Of a DNA stretch of 64,000 nt, positions 6,569 through 45,193 are shown piece after piece (within the stretch, counting starts at the first letter, position 1; every line of letters starts with the position of its first letter). The notes beneath the pieces were generated by a model. It did not search any database. It was given only the letters and a program-made list of their open reading frames with translations, and was not told the DNA's origin. Source of the DNA: Phaeosaccion multiseriatum (Eukaryota > Protista > Ochrophyta, other classes); contig OZ218950.1 of NCBI GenBank assembly GCA_965112735.1, positions 6,448,001-6,512,000 on the forward strand, given 5' to 3'. The translations under genes were made by a program, and so were the position numbers.

Positions 6569-6816
6569 CTACGTCTTCAGGACCTCGAAAAGTAAATCCA
6601 AAGCGAGTAAGTCACTCTCGTCTTGCCGAGACACGGTACCAGCATTCTGTCGTTCCTGCAGCTGGTTACGCTGGTTGGCGAGTATGGTGCGCGTCTCCTC
6701 GTCATCGGAAGCCGCCCCGATCAGGCCAAGCACCCGATCGCGGAAGCGCTTCCGCTGCTGCGCCTTGAGTGAAAATGAAAGACGGGCACGGGGGAAAGTT
6801 TCACGGCTGATGCGCA

Positions 6817-6865
<49 letters not shown>

Positions 6866-6917
6866 GCGCCTCGATCCCCTTGCCTTCCTTGCCTTCTCGT
6901 CTGCGTAGTGGAGATGG

Positions 6918-6973
<56 letters not shown>

Positions 6974-7209
6974 GACCTCGAAAAGTAAATCCAAAGCGAG
7001 TAAGTCACTCTCGTCTTGCCGAGACACGGTACCAGCATTCTGTCGTTCCTGCAGCTGGTTACGCTGGTTGGCGAGTATGGTGCGCGTCTCCTCGTCATCG
7101 GAAGCCGCCCCGATCAGGCCAAGCACCCGATCGCGGAAGCGCTTCCGCTGCTGCGCCTTGAGTGAAAATGAAAGACGGGCACGGGGGAAAGTTTCACGGC
7201 TGATGCGCA

Positions 7210-7249
<40 letters not shown>

Positions 7250-7301
7250 GCGCCTCGATCCCCTTGCCTTCCTTGCCTTCTCGTCTGCGTAGTGGAGATG
7301 G

Positions 7302-7363
<62 letters not shown>

Positions 7364-10300
7364 GCGCCTCGATCCCCTTGCCTTCCTTGCCTTCTCGTCT
7401 GCGTAGTGGAGATGGGGCGTGCAGCAGTTGAAGTAAGAAAAAAAGAGCTATGTATATGTGTGTGTGTGTGTGTGTCGACGTGAGAAGAAAGGGCAGCAGC
7501 TGGGCGGTGACTGACGTACTTTGCTGTTGTACATAAATGGAGACAATGCCCTTGCAGTCACATGAACGCCGCCTGTGTGCATCCTCTGCCGCCTCCCTGC
7601 TCCTCGCCTGGAGGAGGTCCTGCTTTGCCGGGCACCCCTCCGGGTTTGTCCCGCATTTGAAGCCGTTGCTGGCCCTTTCCTTCTCGTCTGCGTAGTGGAG
7701 CCGAAGGAGATGGGGCGTGCAGCAGTTGAAGTAAGAAAAAAAAGAGCTATGTGTGTGTGTGTGTGTGTGTGTCGAAGTGAGAAGAAAGAGCAGGGGTGGG
7801 GTGGTTACGTACGTTGCTGCTGTTGATAGATGGAGACAATGCCCTTGCAGTCACATGAACGCCGCCTGTGTGCATCCTCTGCCGCCTCCCTGCTCCTCGC
7901 CTGGAGGAGGTCCTGCTTTGCCGGGCACCCCTCCGGGTTTGTCCCGCATTTGAAGCCGTTGCTGGCCCTTGCCTTCTTGTCTGCGTAGTGGAGCCGAAGG
8001 AGATGGGGCGTGCAGCAGTTGAAGTAAGAAAAAAAGAGCTATGTATGTGTGTGTGTGTGTGTCGAAGTGAGAAGAAAGGGCAGCAGCTGGGCGGTGACTG
8101 ACGTACTTTGCTGTTGTACATAAATGGAGACAATGCCCTTGCAGTCACATGAACGCCGCCTGTGTGCATCCTCTGCCGCCTCCCTGCTCCTCGCCTGGAG
8201 GAGGTCCTGCTTTGCCGGGCACCCCTCCGGGTTTGTCCCGCATTTGAAGCCGTTGCTGGCCCTTGCCTTCTCGTCTGCGTAGTGGAGCCGAAGGAGATGG
8301 GGCGTGCAGCAGTTGAAGTAAGAAAAAAAGAGCTATGTATGTGTGTGTGTGTGTGTGTGTGTCGAAGTGAGAAGAAAGGGCAGCAGCTGGGCGGTGACTG
8401 ACGTACTTCGCTGTTGTACATAAATGGAGACGAGGTCCTCGCAGTCACATGAACGCCGCCTGTGTGCATCCTCTGCCGCCTCCCTGCTCCTCGCCTGGAG
8501 GAGGTCCTGCTTTGCCGGGCACCCCTCCGGGTTTGTCCCGCATTTGAAGCCGTTGCTGGCCTCTGCCTTCTCGTCTGCGTAGTGGAGCCGAAGGAGGTGG
8601 GGGGCGTGCAGCAGTTGAAGTAAGAAAAAAAGAGCTATGTATGTGTGTGTGTGTGTGTGTCGAAGTGAGAAGAAAGAGCAGCAGCTGGGCGGTGACTGAC
8701 GTACTTTTCTGTTGCACATAAATGGAGACAATGCCCTTGCAGTCACATGAACGCCGCCTGTGTGCATCCTCTGCCGCCTCCCTGCTCCTCGCCTGGAGGA
8801 GGTCCTGCTTTGCCGGGCACCCCTCCGGGTTTGTCCCGCATTTGAAGCCGTTGCTGGCCTCTGCCTTCTCGTCTGCGTAGTGGAGCCGAAGGAGGTGGGG
8901 GGCGTGCAGCAGTTGAAGTAAGAAAAAAAGAGCTATGTATGTGTGTGTGTGTGTGTGTCGAAGTGAGAAGAAAGAGCAGGGGTGGGGTGGTTACGTACGT
9001 TGCTGCTGTTGATAGATGGAGACAATGCCCTTGCAGGCACATGGAAACCGCGAGTGTCCTTCCTCTGCCGCCTCCCTGCTCCTCGCCTGGAGGAGGTCCT
9101 GCTTTGCCGGGCACCCCTCCGGGTTTGTCCCGCACTTGAAGCCCTGGCTGGCCACTGCCTTCTCGTCTGCGTGGTGGAGCCGAAGGAGATGGGGCGTGCA
9201 GCAGTTGAAGTAAGAAAAAAGAGCTATGTATGTGTGTGTGTGTGTGTGTCGAAGTGAGAAGAAAGAGCAGGGGTGGGGTGGTTACGTACGTTGCTGCTGT
9301 TGATAGATGGAGACAATGCCCTTGCAGGCACATGAACACCGCGAGTGTCCTTGCTCTGCCGCCTCCCTGCTCCTCGCCGTGAGGAGGTCCTGCTTGGCCG
9401 GGCACCCCTCCGGATCGTCCTTGCACTTGTAGCCCTGGCTGCCGTCTGCCTTCTCGTCTGCGTAGTGGAGCCGAAGGAGATGGGGCGTGCAGCAGTTGAA
9501 GTAAGAAAAAAAAGAGCTATGTGTGTGTGTGTGTGTGTGTGTCGAAGTGAGAAGAAAGAGCAGGGGTGGGGTGGTTACGTACGTTGCTGCTGTTGATAGA
9601 TGGAGACAATGCCCTTGCAGTCACATGAACGCCGCCTGTGTGCATCCTCTGCCGCCTCCCTGCTCCTCGCCTGGAGGAGGTCCTGCTTTGCCGGGCACCC
9701 CTCCGGATCGTCCTTGCACTTGTAGCCCTGGCTGGCCCTTGCCTTCTCGTCTGCGTAGTGGAGCCGAAGGAGATGGGGCGTGCAGCAGTTGAAGTAAGAA
9801 AAAAAGAGCTATGTATATGTGTGTGTGTGTGTGTGTCGAAGTGAGAAGAAAGGGCAGCAGCTGGGCGGTGACTGACGTACTTTGCTGTTGTACATAAATG
9901 GAGACAATGCCCTTGCAGTCACATGAACGCCGCCTGTGTGCATCCTCTGCCGCCTCCCTGCTCCTCGCCTGGAGGAGGTCCTGCTTTGCCGGGCACCCCT
10001 CCGGGTTTGTCCCGCATTTGAAGCCGTTGCTGGCCCTTTCCTTCTCGTCTGCGTAGTGGAGCCGAAGGAGATGGGGCGTGCAGCAGTTGAAGTAAGAAAA
10101 AAAAGAGCTATGTGTGTGTGTGTGTGTGTGTGTGTCGAAGTGAGAAGAAAGAGCAGGGGTGGGGTGGTTACGTACGTTGCTGCTGTTGATAGATGGAGAC
10201 AATGCCCTTGCAGTCACATGAACGCCGCCTGTGTGCATCCTCTGCCGCCTCCCTGCTCCTCGCCTGGAGGAGGTCCTGCTTGGCCGGGCACCCCTCCGGA

Positions 10301-13133
10301 TCGTCCTTGCACTTGTAGCCCTGGCTGGCCCTTGCCTTCTCGTCTGCGTAGTGGAGCCGAAGGAGGTGGGGGGCGTGCAGCAGTTGAAGTAAGAAAAAAA
10401 AGAGGTATGTGTGTGTGTGTGTGTGTCGAAGTGAGAAGAAAGAGCAGGGGTGGGGTGGTTACGTACGTTGCTGCTGTTGATAGATGGAGACAATGCCCTT
10501 GCAGTCACATGAACGCCGCCTGTGTGCATCCTCTGCCGCCTCCCTGCTCCTCGCCTGGAGGAGGTCCTGCTTGGCCGGGCACCCCTCCGGATCGTCCTTG
10601 CACTTGTAGCCCTGGCTGGCCCTTGCCTTCTCGTCTGCGTAGTGGAGCCGAAGGAGATGGGGCGTGCAGCAGTTGAAGTAAGAAAAAAAAGAGCTATGTG
10701 TGTGTGTGTGTGTCGAAGTGAGAAGAAAGAGCAGCAGCTGGGCGGTGACTGACGTACTTTGCTGCTGTTGATAGATGGAGACAATGCCCTTGCAGGCACA
10801 TGAACACCGCGAGTGTCCTTCCTCTGCCGCCTCCCTGCTCCTCGCCTGGAGGAGGTCCTGCTTGGCCGGGCACCCCTCCGGATCGTCCTTGCATTTGAAG
10901 CCGTAGCTGGCCACTGCGTCCAGGCGTATGTTCAGGGGCCGAGGGGGGGTGGGGCGTGCAGCAGGTAGTTGAAGTAAGAAAGAAAGAGTTACAAAGAAAT
11001 GAGGGACTAGAAGTGGGAAGAAAGAGCAGCAGCCGGGCGGTGACATCCCTCTTTCTTGAAGAGCAATGGACACGATGGTCTGAAAGTCACACAACACACC
11101 TACAAAACACCCACCCACACACACACACACCCCCACACACACACACCCACCCACCCACACACCCACCCACACCCACCCACCCACCCACCCACACACCTAC
11201 CCACACAGCCACACACACGGCTACACAGCTACACACACCCACCCACCCACCCACCCACCCACCCACCCACCCACACACACACCTACCTACACAGCTACAT
11301 ACACACCCACACACACTTCACACACCAAAGGTGGACGCATGTTTTACTCACCAGCTTCGCAGGGGGGCTCGTAATGACACTTCTCCTCTGCGGTTGACCA
11401 CACACTCACTGAGGAAGCATTGGGAACGAGGGCCAGCAGCTTGTCCCGCAGGGCAAGCTTATCGCCTTCGTCGTGGCAGACCGCCTTGACGTCCCCGTTG
11501 ACCTGGTGTTGCGGTTCCCCGGTAAGCTCCAGTGGGGCAGTCAAGTTGGTGAGGTTGGGGAAGACGCGAGCAATGGCCTCGGGGCGGGCAAAGCCGAGGG
11601 ACCCAACTCTGCCTGGTCCCTTGCTGACGGCAAGGCTTGTCACGCGGAGGAGGGCTTGCCCCCAGGTAACAAGTCTCCACCAGGCAAGCGGGTCCAAGCC
11701 GGAGAAGGTGAGCGAGTGAACGCGTCCGTTCGAGTGCACCACTCCGAGCACTTTCTCCATGAGATGGGGTGTCAGCTGACAGTCGGAGAAACGCCTCGAA
11801 AAGATGGACGAGATGCTGTGGCACCTGGTCGGCGGAGAGGGCGCACAGAAGGTCGACGGCCTTGTCCACGTGTCCTGCCTCGCATAGGCTGTTGATGCAG
11901 GCGGAGACGGTGAGGCCGCGCATCGACGCAGGGATGGGGTCGAAGCGGCGCAGAAGCATGTCGGGTTGGAACTGGGGAGCCTGCTCCGCGCCCGCGGTGA
12001 CCGCCAGTGCTTGGACGACATGCCCGACGGCCTCTCGATCAGCCTCGTTGAGAAGCTGCGCCAGCCGCATCACCGCCACAGCCTCCAGAGCAGCCAAGAG
12101 CCAGCGCCACCAACCCGAGGGGTTGATGGTTAGGAGGAGGAGCAGGCCATCCGCTGCCACGCGGATGGCCTCGCGAACGAACGCCGTGCGGCCCAGCGCC
12201 ACAACCACCTGAAGGTGGAGAAGGGCCAGCAAGTGCCGCAGCATCCTGCCGCCAAGGGCTACCAGGTCTTCTGGCAGGTGGTTGGTGTTGCGTCGGGCCA
12301 CCCTGTACTCAACCCCTCCCTCTCTGTCATTTCTCTCCTCCACGCGGCAGACGGGCACGGGAATGAGGTTCACCACCACATTCTTGTCAACCTCATTCAC
12401 GCGGCGCCACTCATGGAAGGGAGCGCCGCCCTCGTCCCACGACAGGTGCGATACGTAGTCCGACACGTAGCAGGTGACACGCCCCCAGTCGCCGAGGTGG
12501 CCAACAAAGAGTAGGGGCCCATCCGTGGCCCCATCCGTCGGTCCACACGGCGTGGGGATGCCAGGGGAAGCCATCAGGGTGGGGCCCACGACAAGCTCAA
12601 CGTACTTGTCCGCCTTGGCATCGCCGCTCGCCGCGGGGTTGTTGTGACCCCATTCCTTGAGCTGCTCCGCCCCCTGCACCGTCGTGTGGGCCCAGGGCTT
12701 GCTCCCGGGTTGGTGCACAGTGGATGCCCCTAGGCGCAAGCGGTAGCACCGTGTGCCGTTGGACAACAGCTCGCCATCGCCAATGGAGAGCACCTTGGAG
12801 ACGAGACGGGCGTTCGATGGCTTCCACCCGCCACACTTGCCGGCTGGAGGGGTGCCTCCAACATCGCTGCTGCTGGGGAGGGGCAGAAGGAGAGAAGAGA
12901 CAGGGAGAGAGAGAAAATCACAAAATTGTACGTGGCTTTGGCAGTTGGGGCATATCGATCGAAGAGACAACAGAGGGCAAGGGGAAGATGAGAAGTAGAC
13001 CCCATTTCTTGCCTCACCTGGCAGATGCAGCCCCCGAGCGGCTGCTGCCGCCTTCTCCCGCCCGGAGAGGCGATCGCTGCATGTCGCTATCCTCATCATC
13101 GCTGATGACGATAGTCTCCCTGTCGTCTGCCAT
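6569..13133 (-). CDS. Novel 16-exon, ~1535-aa protein: SIM, degenerate UDG-like domain, PPR/LRR-like segment, 12 x 56-aa Cys/His repeats (one exon each), poly-Asn and a duplicated C-terminal domain
   Basis: Exons 13133-13018, 12872-11825, 11775-11352, 11099-10758, then 168-nt exons 10634-10467, 10343-10176, 10048-9881, 9750-9583, 9457-9290, 9166-8999, 8872-8705, 8574-8407, 8274-8107, 7980-7813, 7687-7520, and a final exon 7398-6569. All introns are GT..AG and all phases are compatible. Total 4608 nt; no internal stop seen. Confidence 0.75.
6582..7412 (-). repeat. Nested duplications punctuated by (AAC)n/(GTT)n tracts within the final exon
   Basis: Two copies of MRISRETFP...LDLLFEV and three copies of the EKARKARGSRR segment, separated by poly-Asn runs. 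Confidence 0.9.
7399..11050 (-). repeat. Tandem array of ~290-300-bp exon+intron cassettes (12 units)
   Basis: Near-identical units. Each is a 168-nt exon followed by a 121-132-nt intron (GTACGT...(CA)n...CGCAG). Confidence 0.95.
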
Positions 13134-38300: not shown

Positions 38301-41300
38301 CAATCTTGTCTTCTCTTACGTGTGAGTATGTCTTGAAAACTTGGCTTCGAAACAAAAGACATGCATGTCCTACATACACACACAACCATCGCTCGCTGCA
38401 TTCTATGCGTTCCCGACATCCCAATCGTGCATCCACATCTTCCTTGTTTCGCTGACTCCATCTTGCTTGTCACACTCGTTCTTCTTATCCTTATCCCTGT
38501 TTCCCTTCTTCTCGACAAACGCGCCCTCAGGTTGTGGGCTGTCAGACTGCCGCGCGCGGCTACTTGGCTCGGCGCCTGCTGCGAGACTTGAAAGACCCTT
38601 ACAGGCAGATGGCAGTGGATGAACTCGCCACTGCCCTGCTGAAGGCGGAAGAGGAGCTGAATCAGGCGCTGGAGGACAAGGTCTTCTCTCGGTGTGAGGA
38701 GCTGCAAACGCGCATCACCCACATCCAGCGCGTGCTCAAGGACAAGGGCGGAGTCCCGATTGATGCGGAGGGAGGAGGAAGCGCCTCAGGCGGCGATAGT
38801 CCCTCCTCCCACAACGGGATGAATCGCGAAGAGATTGAAATTCGCATTCTCGAGACGCAGCTGCGACTGGACGCTGCCAGTGCTGACAAGGACTTTGGCC
38901 TTTGTGGACAGCTGCAGGAAGCCATGTCGGCACTCGAGGCCATCAAGGCGCAGCACAAGGCTCAGCATCCCACCATGGAGGAGGTGGAGGAGGGCATTGC
39001 CAAGGCCAAGGTGGACATTGAGCACGCCATGACAGGCAAAGACTTCAGCAGGTGTGCTCGGCTGCAGGCAGATATTGAGGTGTTTGAGACGCAGCGAGCG
39101 AAACTCGTTGCCGCGAAAGAGGCAGCAGCAGCGGCGGCTGGAGGAGGGGCTGTAGGAGGCTCGGGCGACGATCTGTCCAAGCTGATGCGAGGAGAGCTTG
39201 CGGGCAGGCTGGAGGAGGCGAAGGCTGCGCTGGCGGAGGCCGAGAAGGAACGGCGCTTCAACGAGTGTGTATCCCTCCAGGCGAGGATTGATGCTGTGCA
39301 GCAGGCCATCGATGCCCTGCCTGCAGTGGATACCTTGGAAGAGGCCGTTCGCGAGACAAAGGAGAGACTCGAAGCTGCGACAAGTGCCAAAGACTATCGA
39401 GTGCAAGCGGAGCTGACGATCGAGTTGGAACGAGTGTCGACACAGCTTGCAGCAATGGTGGAGGACGAGCAGAAGGAGTTTTCGAGAGAGAAGGTGACGC
39501 TCCGCCTGGGTGAGCTTGAGGGGCTGGTGAAGAAGGCAATCGCAGATAAGGACTTTGTGCAGTGTGGGCCTTTGCAGAAGGAGATTGATAAGCTGGAGAA
39601 GATTAAAGCCACCTTCCCCTCGGCGGAGAAGCTCGACGCGGATATTGAGGCAAAGGAGGAAGCCGTTAAGGCCAGCCTCGCCGCGAGAGACTTTTCTGCT
39701 TGTGCAACGCTGGAGGAGGAGCTCAAGGGACTAAAGGGAGAGCGCGCACTTTGCCCTGAGCCTCTGCCCGTGAAGAAGACGATGAAACAGCCGGAAGACG
39801 GCGCTAAGAAGGCCCCCGTTGCCGCGAGAGTTGTAGCGGGGGGAGTTGGAGCAACAGTACCTACCGCACCGCTGACTGCCGCTGCTACTTCACCATTGGC
39901 GGCTCGGTCCAAGAAGAATGGCGTCGCAGTAGTGTCTGCCAAACCTTTGACGGCGAAGAAACAGCCCAAGTCAGGAGCACCAAAAGCAGCGTCAGCAGCA
40001 GCAGAGACACGGCCGGTGTCGAAGCTGCGGCCCAAGCAGCCCGTGACTCTCTCTCAAGAGGCCACCGTGGAGGAAGTCGCGCTGGAGATGAGCAAGCACC
40101 GCACTGACGCGGCACTTCTCGTGTCGTCTTCCGGCGCTCTGGCAGGCATCATTACGGACAACGATCTGACCAGGAGGGTCGTGGCCAAGGGAGTCGATCC
40201 CACGACCACCGCAGTGGCCGATGTCATGACCGCCAATCCCCTCTGTGTGGCGATGGAAGACTCGGCGCTGGAGGCCCTAGGGATCATGATGCAGCGTCAT
40301 TTCCGGCACTTGCCAGTGACTTCCGGCTCAGAGAAGGGCGGTGGTGTATCGGGACTGCTGGACATTGCCAAGGTCATGTACGATGCGATTTCCTGCTTGG
40401 AGAAGAAGGCGCAGAGAGAGAAGGAGAACGGAGGAATGGGAAGTGGGAAGGGAGGAGGGGGGGCGTTGGGAGAGAGCAGCGTGGCCAACTTGGAGAATAT
40501 GACGCGGGCATTGGGCAAGAGCAGTGGAGGAGCCGGGGCGGGCAAGAAGGCGGCGCAGCAGGCCGCAGTGATGCAGATGCTCCTCCAGCAGGTGTTTGCG
40601 GACAATGAGGAGCCGACCTTGGGTGATGTGCTCCAGTCCAAGGGCACACCACAGTTCGTTTCTCCCTCAGACAGCGTGCGAGCCGTGGCGGAGGTGATGG
40701 CGGAGTGCCGAAAGGCGGTGCTGGTGCTTGACGGACGCTCTCTCGTGGGTATCTTCACGCCCAAGGACCTGCTGAACCGCGTGCTGGCGAAGGGTCTATC
40801 TCCAGACGAGACGGCGGTGGAGGAGGTGATGACTCCCAACCCGGACAGCGTATCTCCAGAGCTGAGCGTGCTGGACGCGCTTCATCAGATGCACGAGTAC
40901 AAGTACTTGCACTTGCCTGTGGTGGAGGAGAGCGGGAAGGTGATTGGTCTGGTGGACGTGATGGAGGTGATTGGCGCGGCGGGAGGAGAGGACGGCTCCG
41001 GATGGGAGTCCTTTTTTGGCAGCGCTATGGATGCCCGAGATGACATGTCCGACACTGCTAGCCTTCACAGCGTAGGGAGCTTGCGAGGCCCGAGGAGCGA
41101 GGCCAGCTCCAAGGCTCCGAGCGGAGTGTCGACCAAGGCTGCCGCGGCGGCTGCTGCTGATGCGCGGCCGGTGTCTCGCCTCCGGCCCAAGATGCCCATC
41201 ATTATGGACGACTCGAGTAGCATCGAGGAGGTGGCGGTGGAGATGTCGAGAAAGAGGACAGACGCGGCTCTGTTGGTGAGCGAGGAGGGCGCTCTCCAGG

Positions 41301-44300
41301 GCATCGTAACGGACAATGACCTGACGAGGAGAGTGGTGGCGAAGAGCGTTGACCCCTCTTCCGGTGTGTCTGAGGTGATGACGCCCAACCCGCGGTGTGT
41401 GCAGATGGAGGACTCTGCTCTGGAGGCTTTGGGGGTGATGCTGGAGCGTCACTTCAGGCACTTGCCGGTGACGGATGAGGCGGGGTCTGTATCGGGGTTG
41501 CTCGACATTGCCAAGGTTATGTACGATGCCATTTCGCGACTGGAGAAGGTGGCGGAGAAGAAGAACGAGGAAGGAGGAGGTGACCCGAACGCGGCCGCCA
41601 TGGCAATGATGGCAACAATGCAGGCTGGGAGCAAGAAGGGCATGAGTGCGAAGCAGGCGGCGGCAATGCAGATGATGCTGCAGATGCTGGGGGGTGATGA
41701 CAACAAGCTGGCGTCCTTGGGGGAGGTACTGTCCTCCAAGGCGAAGCCTCTGTTCGTTTCTCCCTCAGACAGCGTGCGAGCCGTGGCGGAGGTGATGGCG
41801 GAGTGCCGAAAGGCGGTGCTGGTACTTGACGGACGCTCTCTCGTGGGTATCTTCACGCCCAAGGACCTGCTGAACCGCGTGCTGGCGAAGGGTCTATCTC
41901 CAGACGAGACGGCGGTGGAGGCGGTGATGACTCCCAACCCGGACAGCGTATCTCCAGAGCTGAGCGTGCTGGACGCGCTTCATCAGATGCACGAGTACAA
42001 GTACTTGCACTTGCCGGTGGTGGAGGAGAGCGGGAAGGTGATTGGTCTGGTGGACGTGATGGAGGTGATTGCTGCTGTTGTCGGGGAGGAGGGCTCTGAC
42101 GGATGGGAAGCCTTCTTTGGAGGTGCGATGGACATGGGAGACGAGTTTTCAGACACCGCGAGCCACCACAGTTTGGGCAGTATGAGGAGCAAGAGGAGCA
42201 CCAAGAGCAAGAAGACGACAATATCAGAGGCGCCATCGAAGGCTGCCGCGGCGGCTGCTGCTGATGCGCGGCCGGTGTCTCGCCTCCGGCCCAAGATGCC
42301 CATCATTATGGACGACTCGAGTAGCATCGAGGAGGTGGCGGTGGAGATGTCGAGGAAGAGGACAGACGCGGCTCTGTTGGTGAGCGAGGAGGGAGCGCTC
42401 CAGGGCATCGTAACGGACAATGACCTGACGAGGAGAGTGGTGGCGAAGAGTGTTGACCCCTCTTCCGGTGTGTCTGAGGTGATGACGCCCAACCCGCGGT
42501 GTGTGCAGATGGAGGACTCTGCTCTGGAGGCGTTGGGGGTGATGCTGGAGCGTCACTTCAGGCACTTGCCGGTGACGGATGAGGCGGGGTCTGTATCGGG
42601 GCTGCTCGACATTGCCAAGGTTATGTACGATGCCATTTCGCGACTGGAGAAGGTGGCGGAGAAGAAGAACGAGGAAGGAGGAGGTGACCCGAACGCGGCC
42701 GCCATGGCAATGATGGCAACGATGCAGACTGGGAGCAAGAAGGGCGTGAGTGCGAAGCAGGCGGCGGCAATGCAGATGATGCTGCAGATGCTGGGGGGTG
42801 ATGACAACAAGCTGGCATCCTTGGGGGAGGTACTGTCCTCCAAGGCGAAGCCTCTGTTCGTTTCTCCCTCAGACAGCGTGCGAGCCGTGGCGGAGGTGAT
42901 GGCGGAGTGCCGAAAGGCGGTGCTGGTACTTGACGGACGCTCTCTCGTGGGTATCTTCACGCCCAAGGACCTGCTGAACCGCGTGCTGGCAAAGGGTCTA
43001 TCTCCAGACGAGACGGCGGTGGAGGCGGTGATGACTCCCAACCCGGACAGCGTATCTCCAGAGCTGAGCGTGCTGGACGCGCTTCATCAGATGCACGAGT
43101 ACAAGTACTTGCACTTGCCGGTGGTGGAGGAGAGCGGGAAGGTGATTGGTCTGGTGGACGTGATGGAGGTGATTGCTGCTGTTGTCGGGGAGGAGGGCTC
43201 TGACGGATGGGAAGCCTTCTTTGGAGGTGCGATGGACATGGGAGACGAGTTTTCAGACACCGCGAGCCACCACAGTTTGGGCAGTATGAGGAGCAAGAGG
43301 AGCACCAAGAGCAAGAAGACGACAATATCAGAGGCGCCATCGAAGGCTGCCGCGGCGGCTGCTGCTGATGCGCGGCCGGTGTCTCGCCTCCGGCCCAAGA
43401 TGCCCATCATTATGGACGACTCGAGTAGCATCGAGGAGGTGGCGGTGGAGATGTCGAGGAAGAGGACAGACGCAGCTCTGTTGGTGAGCGAGGAGGGAGC
43501 GCTCCAGGGCATCGTAACGGACAATGACCTGACGAGGAGAGTGGTGGCGAAGAGTGTTGACCCCTCTTCCGGTGTGTCTGAGGTGATGACGCCCAACCCG
43601 CGGTGTGTGCAGATGGAGGACTCTGCTCTGGAGGCTTTGGGGGTGATGCTGGAGCGCCACTTCAGGCACTTGCCGGTGACGGATGAGGCGGGGTCTGTAT
43701 CGGGGCTGCTCGACATTGCCAAGGTTATGTACGATGCCATTTCGCGACTGGAGAAGGTGGCAAAGAAGAAGAACGAGGGAGGGGATGGAGCCAGCGATAT
43801 GATGTCATCGGCGATGGCAATGATGGCGAAGCAAAGCGGCATGAATAGTGCGCAAGCTTCTGCAATGAAGATGATGATGCAACAGTTGTACGGCGGCGCC
43901 GATAGTGAGCAGCAGCAAACGCTGGAGGATGTCTTGGCCTCCAAGGCGAAGCCTCTGTTCGTTTCTCCCTCAGACAGCGTGCGAGCGGTGGCGGAGGTGA
44001 TGGCGGAGTGCCGAAAGGCGGTGCTGGTACTTGACGGCCGCTCTCTCGTGGGTATCTTCACGCCCAAGGACCTGCTGAACCGCGTGCTGGCGAAGGGTCT
44101 ATCTCCAGACGAGACGGCGGTGGAAGATGTGATGACTCCCAACCCGGACAGCGTATCTCCAGAGCTGAGCGTGCTGGACGCGCTTCATCAGATGCACGAG
44201 TACAAGTACTTGCACTTGCCTGTGGTGGAGGAGAGCGGGAAGGTGATTGGTCTGGTGGACGTGATGGAGATTATCACCGCTACCGTGGGGCGTGAGGGCT

Positions 44301-45193
44301 CTGACGCATGGGAAGCCTTCTTTGGGAATGCTATGGATGCCGGAGGCGACGACTTTTCGGACACCGCATCGGAGCGGTCTGCGAGGTCGGCACGCTCGTC
44401 CCACTCGACCACCAGACATATCAAGAGCGGTGCCAGAGCGGTCAAGGGAGGGGTGGGCGCGGTTGCTGCTCCGGGAGCAATGTCTCCCCCCCGAGGTCTC
44501 GTGAGGCAGCACCACACGCCTGCGAGGGGCGGCGAAGGGCTCCAGGCGAGGGCTGTCATGCCAGTGGATGGAGATGGCGGTGCCCCTGGGGGGGACGGCA
44601 TGCTCCAGCACGACTACGAGGCGATGAGTGATATGATGGGCATGAGTGTGAGGGACAATCTCGAGGGAGAGGACGAGCAGTTCGTGTACAAGGTGCTCGA
44701 TCAAGAGGGACACACCCACCGCATTCGCTCTTCGGCAGAGCGGTTGGAGCCTCTGGTGGAGGCGGTGACTTCTAAGCTCACAAAGCTGGCGGCTGGCATG
44801 GGCAGTAGCAGCGACCTTACCGTCACTCTCAAGTACAAGGATGATGAGGGTGACGACTGCCTCCTTGCAGGGGATGACAGCCTGCACGAGGCCATAGACA
44901 TGGCGAGGGCAGCAGGATGGCCGGCCCTCAAGGTCAGCGCTGTTGTTGCCAGCGCACCGGCGAATGCAATGGCGCCTCCTCCTCCTCCAGCAGCTTCTCC
45001 TGCCGCGCAAGAAGGAGGAGGAGGAAAGAAATCAGGTGCAGACACGCAGACACCTGTAGCCTCGGCTGGGGTTTCTGCAGCCGGGGCTTCTCCCAAGGCC
45101 TCTGGGGGTTCGGGCAAGGCCCTGTTGGGAGTTGGGGTAGTAGTAGCCTTGGCTGCAGCGGCAGGCTTTGCGATTCTTGGGCGGAAGAAGTGA
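32316..45193 (+). CDS. Myosin (stramenopile CBS/PB1-tailed, Myo29-like), ~3142 aa, 15 exons
   Basis: Exons 32316-32539, 32784-33000, 33327-33752, 34039-34227, 34421-34540, 34865-35092, 35346-35426, 35666-35806, 35950-36075, 36246-36386, 36641-36813, 37138-37285, 37443-37742, 38015-38266, 38531-45193. Motifs: P-loop [43 protein letters not shown] motifs, 16 CBS, PB1 (LKYKDDEGD) and a C-terminal TM. Confidence 0.95.
41135..43762 (+). repeat. Near-identical 1104-bp in-frame tandem duplications of the four-CBS module
   Basis: Unit starts at 41135, 42239 and 43343, with only scattered substitutions between copies. Confidence 0.95.

Follow-up and report, generated by a model that had tools for sequence, protein, structure and literature searches.

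A recombining tandem array of predicted Cys/His-module exons in an orphan gene of Phaeosaccion multiseriatum

Tandem arrays with one domain per exon, such as the SRCR exons of DMBT1 and the kringle IV-2 units of LPA, undergo concerted evolution. Repeats of a different build are found in PRDM9, a coding minisatellite of C2H2 zinc fingers (PMC3890296, PMC6116924), and snake toxin genes are the setting for ASSET (accelerated segment switch in exons), in which short exon segments are nearly wholly replaced (PMC2474615, PMC2711939). Here, we analysed an array of 12 Cys/His-rich exon cassettes in a 64,000-nucleotide stretch (the window) on contig 1, positions 6448001-6512000, of the ochrophyte Phaeosaccion multiseriatum, whose assembly comprises 67 Mb in 22 contigs. 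An earlier sequence-only reading of the window had described these cassettes as mosaics of independently assorting sub-exon variants and had likened them to PRDM9-type or immune-receptor arrays. Our analysis, which covers one array in one genome, confirmed that recombination or gene conversion made the mosaic units. The closest kind of system is the tandem one-domain-per-exon array under concerted evolution.

The window contains about 59% G+C and many microsatellites, as befits eukaryotic DNA. A search for the coccidian SAG marker family gave no match, with a control that was likewise silent. Tandem Repeats Finder placed a tandem array at 7408-10912 with a period of 291 bp (11.9 copies, 92% matches). 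When the minus strand is cut at the GTACGT donors and ACGCAG acceptors, both present in every unit, the array resolves into 12 predicted cassette exons (U1-U12), arranged as follows.

10758..10913, minus strand: cassette exon 1, 156 nt; YGF / KDD / EGHSRC / Q-end, followed by a type A intron
7520..10634, minus strand: cassette exons 2-12 with the introns between them; 168 nt per exon, all phase 1-1
10634, 10343, 10048, 9750, 9457, 9166, 8872, 8574, 8274, 7980, 7687, minus strand: first bases of cassette exons 2-12
10467, 10176, 9881, 9583, 9290, 8999, 8705, 8407, 8107, 7813, 7520, minus strand: last bases of cassette exons 2-12
7399..7519, minus strand: last cassette intron, 121 nt, with a 9-nt deletion

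Exons 2-12 are 168 nt long without exception. The introns (GTACGT...CAG) measure 123, 123, 127, 130, 125, 123, 126, 130, 132, 126, 125 and 121 nt, and their length differences lie mostly at (CA)n, T and C runs. Each cassette exon has phase 1-1, with two bases of a split codon at its start and one base at its end, in agreement with the upstream donor and the tail exon both here and in a paralogue on contig 6. Read-through of type B introns would meet an in-frame TAA after two codons, and read-through of type A introns would lose the frame, as their lengths are not multiples of three. In the proposed frame, the GC content at codon positions 1/2/3 is 0.60/0.49/0.745, a coding-like order (GC3>GC1>GC2) that matches a clear gene elsewhere in the window (0.65/0.45/0.72); the two other cassette frames differ. 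All 12 exons retain the frame, the splice sites and five Cys/His ligand positions. The sequence-only reading had counted 12 exons between 7520 and 10925. The count stands, but the upper boundary has to be moved: the first cassette most likely starts at 10913, directly after the CAG at 10916-10914, because the contig-6 paralogue has the same acceptor, and 10925-10914 would then be intron.

The variant strings reported for these exons and both intron 5' types are all present. Block 1 is NGFKCGTN (U4, U8-U12), QGYKCKDD (U2, U3, U5, U6), QGFKCGTN (U7) or YGFKCKDD (U1), and block 2 is DAHRRRSCDC, EGHSRCSCAC (U1), EGHSRFPCAC (U7) or QGHSRCSCAC (U6). The cassettes end in IYVQQQ, IYQQQQ, IYVQQK (U8) or EDLVSIYVQQR (U9). 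The two units singled out earlier, 9166-8999 (QG+GTN+EGHSRFP) and 9457-9290 (QG+KDD+QGHSRC), read as described. At the nucleotide level, the 45 variable exon sites are grouped into blocks. Block f (exon positions 36-44), which determines KDD or GTN, is AAGGACGAT in one form and GGGACAAAC in the other, with 7 differences; block h (exon positions 107-130) has 6 differences and separates DAHRRR..D from GHSRC..A. We considered whether KDD and GTN could be related by a compensated frameshift; this takes 2 indels and 3-4 substitutions against 7 substitutions, which is not clearly better.

When each block is treated as one character, all four combinations are found for f and h, for f and intron type, and for h and intron type. 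Across single sites, 260 of the 561 informative pairs are incompatible. The Hudson-Kaplan minimum is 5 recombination events (4 with exons alone), and the pairwise homoplasy index (PHI) lies far under the mean of 5000 permutations, with p<0.001 for both 3-site and 5-site windows. As recurrent identical changes of 6-7 nt are not credible, exchange between units is required, and a duplication tree without recombination cannot explain the units.

Two main unit types, plus a third allele of block h (GHSR) in U1, U6 and U7, describe the array. Type I (QGY-KDD...Q-end, intron type B) comprises U2, U3 and U5; type II (NGF-GTN...V-end, intron type A) comprises U4, U8-U10 and U12. In U11, type II sequence reaches position 130 and type I is in place from position 152, which takes a single breakpoint. 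U6 is a type I unit carrying a type III patch, and U7 switches type several times; these two patterns therefore need short-tract conversion besides unequal crossover. The U3|U4 and U11|U12 transitions share junction, intron variant and exon (U4=U12), which points to a two-unit duplication or a conversion. The exons of U2 and U3 and those of U4 and U12 are exact nucleotide copies, and the 12 units encode 9 distinct amino-acid cassettes (U2=U3=U5, U4=U12). The proposal that the blocks assort independently is overstated. Linkage is seen between neighbouring blocks (Fisher p=0.028 for f and the exon end, p=0.015 for the exon end and intron type) but not between distant ones (p=0.52 for f and h), and it falls off with distance.

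This pattern resembles lamprey variable lymphocyte receptors (VLR) and antigenic-variation cassettes in that combinatorial mosaics arise from few blocks by gene conversion. Here, in contrast, all units are in-frame exons of one gene, and nothing indicates programmed exchange. Genome-wide, no silent donors flanking an incomplete expression site were seen, just the array, a broken two-unit copy and three relics. The immune-receptor analogy is thus unsupported, since neither a donor library nor dedicated diversification machinery is present. At the scale of the segment, the array recalls ASSET: short exon segments are nearly wholly replaced (here 7 of 9 nt, KDD/GTN), and the flanking exon and most of the intron are near-identical. 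At this locus, however, exchange runs among tandem units of one gene, recombination explains the distribution of segments, and there is no toxin or secreted context.

We then asked how the diversity is distributed. Among cassettes, the ratio of non-synonymous to synonymous differences per site (pN/pS, Nei-Gojobori) is 0.91 for U2-U12 and 0.82 for all 12; between type I and type II cassettes, pS is 0.17 and pN 0.087. The non-synonymous variation does lie around the ligands, as had been noted from the sequence, but it shows no significant excess over the synonymous variation (pN/pS 0.8-0.9); non-synonymous changes predominate only because non-synonymous sites make up about 79% of the total. In the type III patch (U2 versus U6), the densest of all, there are 10 non-synonymous and 0 synonymous changes (p~0.1), in a single array with few independent changes. 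Synonymous differences are found only inside or beside non-synonymous patches.

Three patches reach a nucleotide diversity of 0.09-0.18: codons 2-15, codons 36-48, and a stretch formed by codons 51-56 and the initial 30 bases of the intron. Values fall to 0-0.03 in codons 16-35 (the exon core) and over the rest of the intron, with about 0.015 in the intron 3' part. Counted as segregating sites, this gives 41 among the 168 exon positions, versus 4 among 80 intron positions downstream of nucleotide 30 (Fisher p=9e-5). The diversity is patchy by segment rather than split between exon and intron: the intron start behaves like the exon patches, and the exon core like the intron. In the intron 3' part, about 10 of 98 positions on contig 6 depart from the array consensus, so this part is not simply constrained. 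Some array segments have therefore been homogenised since the two loci split, and others keep deep variation. Three states, GTN, the ED-V of U9 and the Pro before Cys43 of U7, are common to the array and the contig-6 cassettes; part of the variation is therefore older than the split. Selection against homogenisation at the ligand-flanking residues would fit this pattern, and selection on the block variants is possible. Neutral segment-by-segment drift of conversion would fit it as well, and has support in that one intron patch behaves like the exon patches and one exon segment like the intron.

Each predicted exon encodes a module of 56 residues with the spacing C12-x6-C19-x18-H38-x4-C43-x-C45. 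The five ligand positions are invariant in 13 of 13 intact cassettes, as is the stretch PEGCPAKQDLL-ARSREAA. The variable residues adjoin Cys12, His38, Cys43 and Cys45, and the helical core (residues 16-35) is invariant. These flanking residues are again the variable ones in the cassettes of contig 6 and the relics of contigs 3 and 8. An AlphaFold2 model from the 11-cassette alignment (predicted local distance difference test score, pLDDT, 70) has a strand at 9-11, helices at 21-26 and 30-39 and a strand at 47-49; with middling confidence, the fold may be described as beta-alpha-alpha-beta.

No relatives of the module were found. Searches were run on single exons or uninterrupted open reading frames (ORFs). 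Three cassette types matched no Pfam family at E up to 1, and PDB sequences held no relative, the sole match being at chance level (E-value 0.2). The 11-cassette profile had 0 matches among 1.84 billion protein representatives, the ESM atlas yielded no relative of the cassette, and an exact DNA pattern scan of metagenome contigs gave 0 matches. Structure searches with the cassette model returned nothing similar (Foldseek best E 4.3; VIA-align best Z 2.4). Within the genome, DNA and profile searches recovered the 12 units, two units on contig 6, an inverted relic pair on contig 3 and one relic on contig 8, and nothing else. The contig-3 pair, at L010 2902-3166, is diverged. The contig-8 relic, at L011 2411-2524, has intron-like upstream sequence and a GT directly after His-Lys-Gln. 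The relics retain G-F-x-C...P-x-K-x-x-L-L-x-A-x-S-x-E-x-A-x-x-A-H and do not have the C-x-C. Judging from the contig-8 relic, the ancestral module may have ended before the C-x-C.

As in PRDM9 (PMC3890296, PMC6116924), small Cys/His modules stand in tandem and have become mosaic through unequal exchange, and few positions vary on an invariant scaffold. The differences are more extensive. The spacing C-x6-C-x18-H-x4-C-x-C is not that of a C2H2 finger (C-x2-4-C-x12-H-x3-5-H; Pfam zf-C2H2), whose pattern the units do not match. Introns separate the repeats, whereas those of PRDM9 lie in one intron-free exon. No PR/SET or KRAB domain was found with Pfam. The variable residues lie beside the ligands and not on the helix, and overall pN/pS (0.8-0.9) is not above 1. 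With no C2H2 match and neither diversification machinery nor a silent donor library, the functional side of the comparison with PRDM9-type or immune-receptor arrays is not supported.

The locus is more like DMBT1- and LPA-type arrays. It shares with them the exon-plus-intron unit, symmetric phase 1-1 exons that can be gained, lost or skipped in frame, near-identical introns, and a reshuffling of units through unequal crossover and conversion. The intron 3' part is also more alike within the array (~0.015) than to contig 6 (~10/98). It differs in that the unit is a new 56-residue Cys/His module without relatives, the host protein looks intracellular, and the gene is a protist orphan that is possibly frameshifted.

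Together, we consider it probable that this is a lineage-specific, recombining tandem exon array in which old block variants survive, a situation that is ordinary for tandem repeats. Twelve exon-plus-intron units of 291 bp, with one 56-residue module per exon, would belong to a lineage-specific gene and would descend from two main types plus a third allele of the His/Cys block (GHSR). Unequal crossover of misaligned units and short-tract gene conversion have recombined the blocks, producing U11 as a single-breakpoint hybrid and U6 and U7 by patch conversions. The same processes would have homogenised the exon core and the 3' 95 nt of the intron, and some block states would predate the split from the contig-6 locus. 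The cassette variation need not have a function. Several points weigh against this explanation. Splicing is inferred from sequence; in the upstream exon, the family frame is lost through a +1 frameshift, so that the array may not be translated together with this exon; one cassette scored low (1528) in language-model recognition; and a single array would look much the same under neutral patchy homogenisation as under selection against homogenisation.

The array is a clean, small case of concerted evolution acting on parts of one unit: within 291 bp, some segments are homogenised array-wide and others keep old, dense alleles common to a paralogous locus. Module and host family, without detectable relatives in about 1.8 billion protein clusters, also point to lineage-specific gene birth and turnover in this alga. 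Should the array prove to be expressed, with its variable patches under selection, it would represent a new type of fast-evolving recognition array.

For the gene around the array, we propose the following structure.

13018..13133, minus strand: exon 1, from the ATG to a GTGAGG donor, ending in phase 2; based on translation and alignment with the contig-6 copy
12873..13017, minus strand: putative intron 1, 145 nt, GTGAGG...pyrimidine tract...CAG, joining AG+C to frame A of exon 2
11352..12872, minus strand: exon 2, family-specific N-terminal domain, ending in phase 1 at a GTGAGT donor
11806..11807, minus strand: +1 frameshift, CC versus C in the contig-6 copy, separating frames A and B of exon 2
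10914..11351, minus strand: intron 2, 438 nt, with a long (GGGT)n tract
6569..7398, minus strand: tail exon, with 275 open codons in the cassette frame up to the stop at 6569-6571

Exon 1 encodes MADDRETIVISDDEDSD..., an acidic N-terminus without a signal peptide; we take TIVISDDEDSD in its product to be a candidate SUMO-interaction-like motif. Exon 2 has a leucine-rich-like end and one PPR-like motif below the Pfam cut-off. Contigs 12 and 3 hold intact, intronless paralogues of 822 aa with which exon 2 is colinear (blastp, 35% identity over 335 aa at E 2e-41; 26% identity over 139 aa). Shortly before the cassettes, the frameshift at 11806-11807 replaces the family frame by an unrelated one. 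The contig-6 ORF (L009 4143-5267) is continuous across this site, and the same stretch is coding in the 822-aa paralogue, for which reason an ordinary intron fails to explain it. The extra C may have arisen in assembly or through a recent disabling mutation. A downstream start, at the Met of MEKVLG in frame B, may bypass it; excision of a 49-nt GT..AG segment (11824-11776) would restore the frame exactly but is speculative. We regard the host gene as an orphan that is possibly broken.

The tail exon contains poly-Asn ((AAC)n) tracts and a C-terminal segment of about 75 aa, with a tandem duplication that includes this segment (window 6581-7358; period 393 bp, 97% matches, Tandem Repeats Finder). 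It shares 79% amino-acid identity with the contig-6 tail. Exact internal copies of the last 16 intron bases and first 35 exon bases also lie within the tail exon, and positions 7284 and 6891 could be alternative acceptors.

Word searches gave 0 matches outside the family for both the 546-aa upstream ORF and the intact 822-aa paralogue. Pfam scans of the upstream exon and the paralogues found no KRAB, SSXRD or PR-SET domain upstream of the array, only the sub-threshold PPR. A UDG-like domain at 12080-12530 was considered and had no Pfam support at E up to 1. The AlphaFold2 model of the family N-terminal domain (5-sequence alignment; pLDDT 41.6) was too poor for searching, and weak F-box/LRR atlas leads (0.8) for this domain were not used. 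A mobile element was likewise rejected, as the family has few copies and dispersal is limited to a short 3' piece.

The contig-6 copy, with 92% identity over 2.78 kb, is the only other cassette-bearing gene copy, and it is clearly broken: indels of -1 and -4 lie upstream, and a 79-nt inverted self-duplication (L009 6150-6228) interrupts the second cassette, giving an exon of 247 nt with a broken frame. Contig 16 carries a frameshifted fragment. Between contigs 1 and 6, the N-terminal domain has a pN/pS of 2.6-3.2 (pooled binomial p~0.007); the family therefore either evolves fast or decays unevenly.

These data bear on three other explanations. The cassettes could be metal-binding recognition modules in which selection keeps ligand-flanking diversity and recombination makes new combinations of binding surfaces, in the manner of PRDM9/KZFP or immune-receptor systems. 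We regard this as unlikely, although it would account for much of what is seen: residues that vary beside Cys12, His38 and Cys43/45 around an invariant helical core; variation at the same positions in the cassettes of contig 6 and the relics of contigs 3 and 8; and the contrast between exon (41/168) and intron 3' (4/80) segregating sites. The confinement of synonymous differences to non-synonymous patches or their surroundings is likewise expected around balanced variants, the N-terminal domain has its high pN/pS between the two paralogues, and the intracellular-looking N-terminus would favour metal binding over disulfides. However, the cassette pN/pS of 0.8-0.9 reveals no significant excess, the diversity contrast follows segments and not coding versus non-coding sequence, each block has just 2-4 alleles, and the module is neither C2H2 nor another known binding domain. 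The frameshift in the host gene and the broken sister copy argue in the same direction. The earlier proposal of varied binding surfaces was unsupported by the tests run, given a pN/pS of ~0.9, no known domain and a frameshifted host gene. A fuller version is improbable: a nuclear protein with a SUMO-interaction-like N-terminus, the family domain, metal-binding modules of an unseen kind kept diverse by selection against homogenisation, and the tail. If it were true, recombination, and possibly skipping of the symmetric exons, would yield a fast-evolving, reprogrammable recognition array, and the PRDM9/KZFP principle would have been invented independently outside animals.

Somewhat less likely than recognition modules is that the array is the remnant of a decaying or dead gene, or a non-coding satellite derived from one, with neutral variation and exons that look intact owing to recent amplification. 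The +1 frameshift at 11806-11807, the indels and split second cassette on contig 6, the frameshifted fragment on contig 16, the relic cassettes on contigs 3 and 8 and a cassette pN/pS near 1 would all fit such decay. Other frames are also open across the units in this GC-rich DNA, and almost all intron indels lie in (CA)n, T or C runs, which weakens the evidence from the invariant exon length. Set against this are the 12 of 12 exons with intact frame, splice sites and five ligand positions, the tail exon open for 275 codons in the matching frame, and the coding-like GC content at codon positions; the lone 1-nt difference could also stem from assembly, have arisen very recently, or be circumvented by the downstream start or the 49-nt excision. 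It is highly improbable that the mosaic units are chimeric consensus sequences of collapsed or co-polished similar units or of two haplotypes. Tandem arrays are error-prone in assembly, but the whole array spans 3.5 kb, well inside single long reads, and its multi-nucleotide blocks are clean, without ambiguous or intermediate states. The exact exon copies (U2=U3, U4=U12) and the recurrence of block states at the independent contig-6 locus also speak against an artefact. A recombining, lineage-specific exon array thus remains our preferred explanation.

Further observations concern the gene family and its surroundings. Window 11347-12838 compared with L009 3800-5264 consists of long runs of 100% identity beside dense clusters of mostly non-synonymous differences, a patchiness that suggests inter-locus conversion and fast protein change. 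An inverted copy (98.7% identity) of the gene 5' end lies head-to-head with the contig-6 paralogue at L009 3243-3396. Owing to this inverted copy, a 779-aa ORF on the opposite strand (L009 1123-3462, minus) includes the same MADDRETIVISDDEDSD stretch. The (GGGT)n tract of intron 2, about 240 nt on the coding strand at window 11088-11325, is kept in the paralogue at L009 5328-5535 and could form G-quadruplexes. The family members on contigs 12 and 3 are 97%-identical 4.1-kb copies (L012 842-4886, L013 2682-6761), both intact 822-aa members without cassettes, each with three N-terminal repeats that contain an IEVCDSADDDE motif. Elsewhere in the window, a single 2219-aa ORF at 38534-45193 on the plus strand has 16 CBS-domain matches and a C-terminal PB1 domain.

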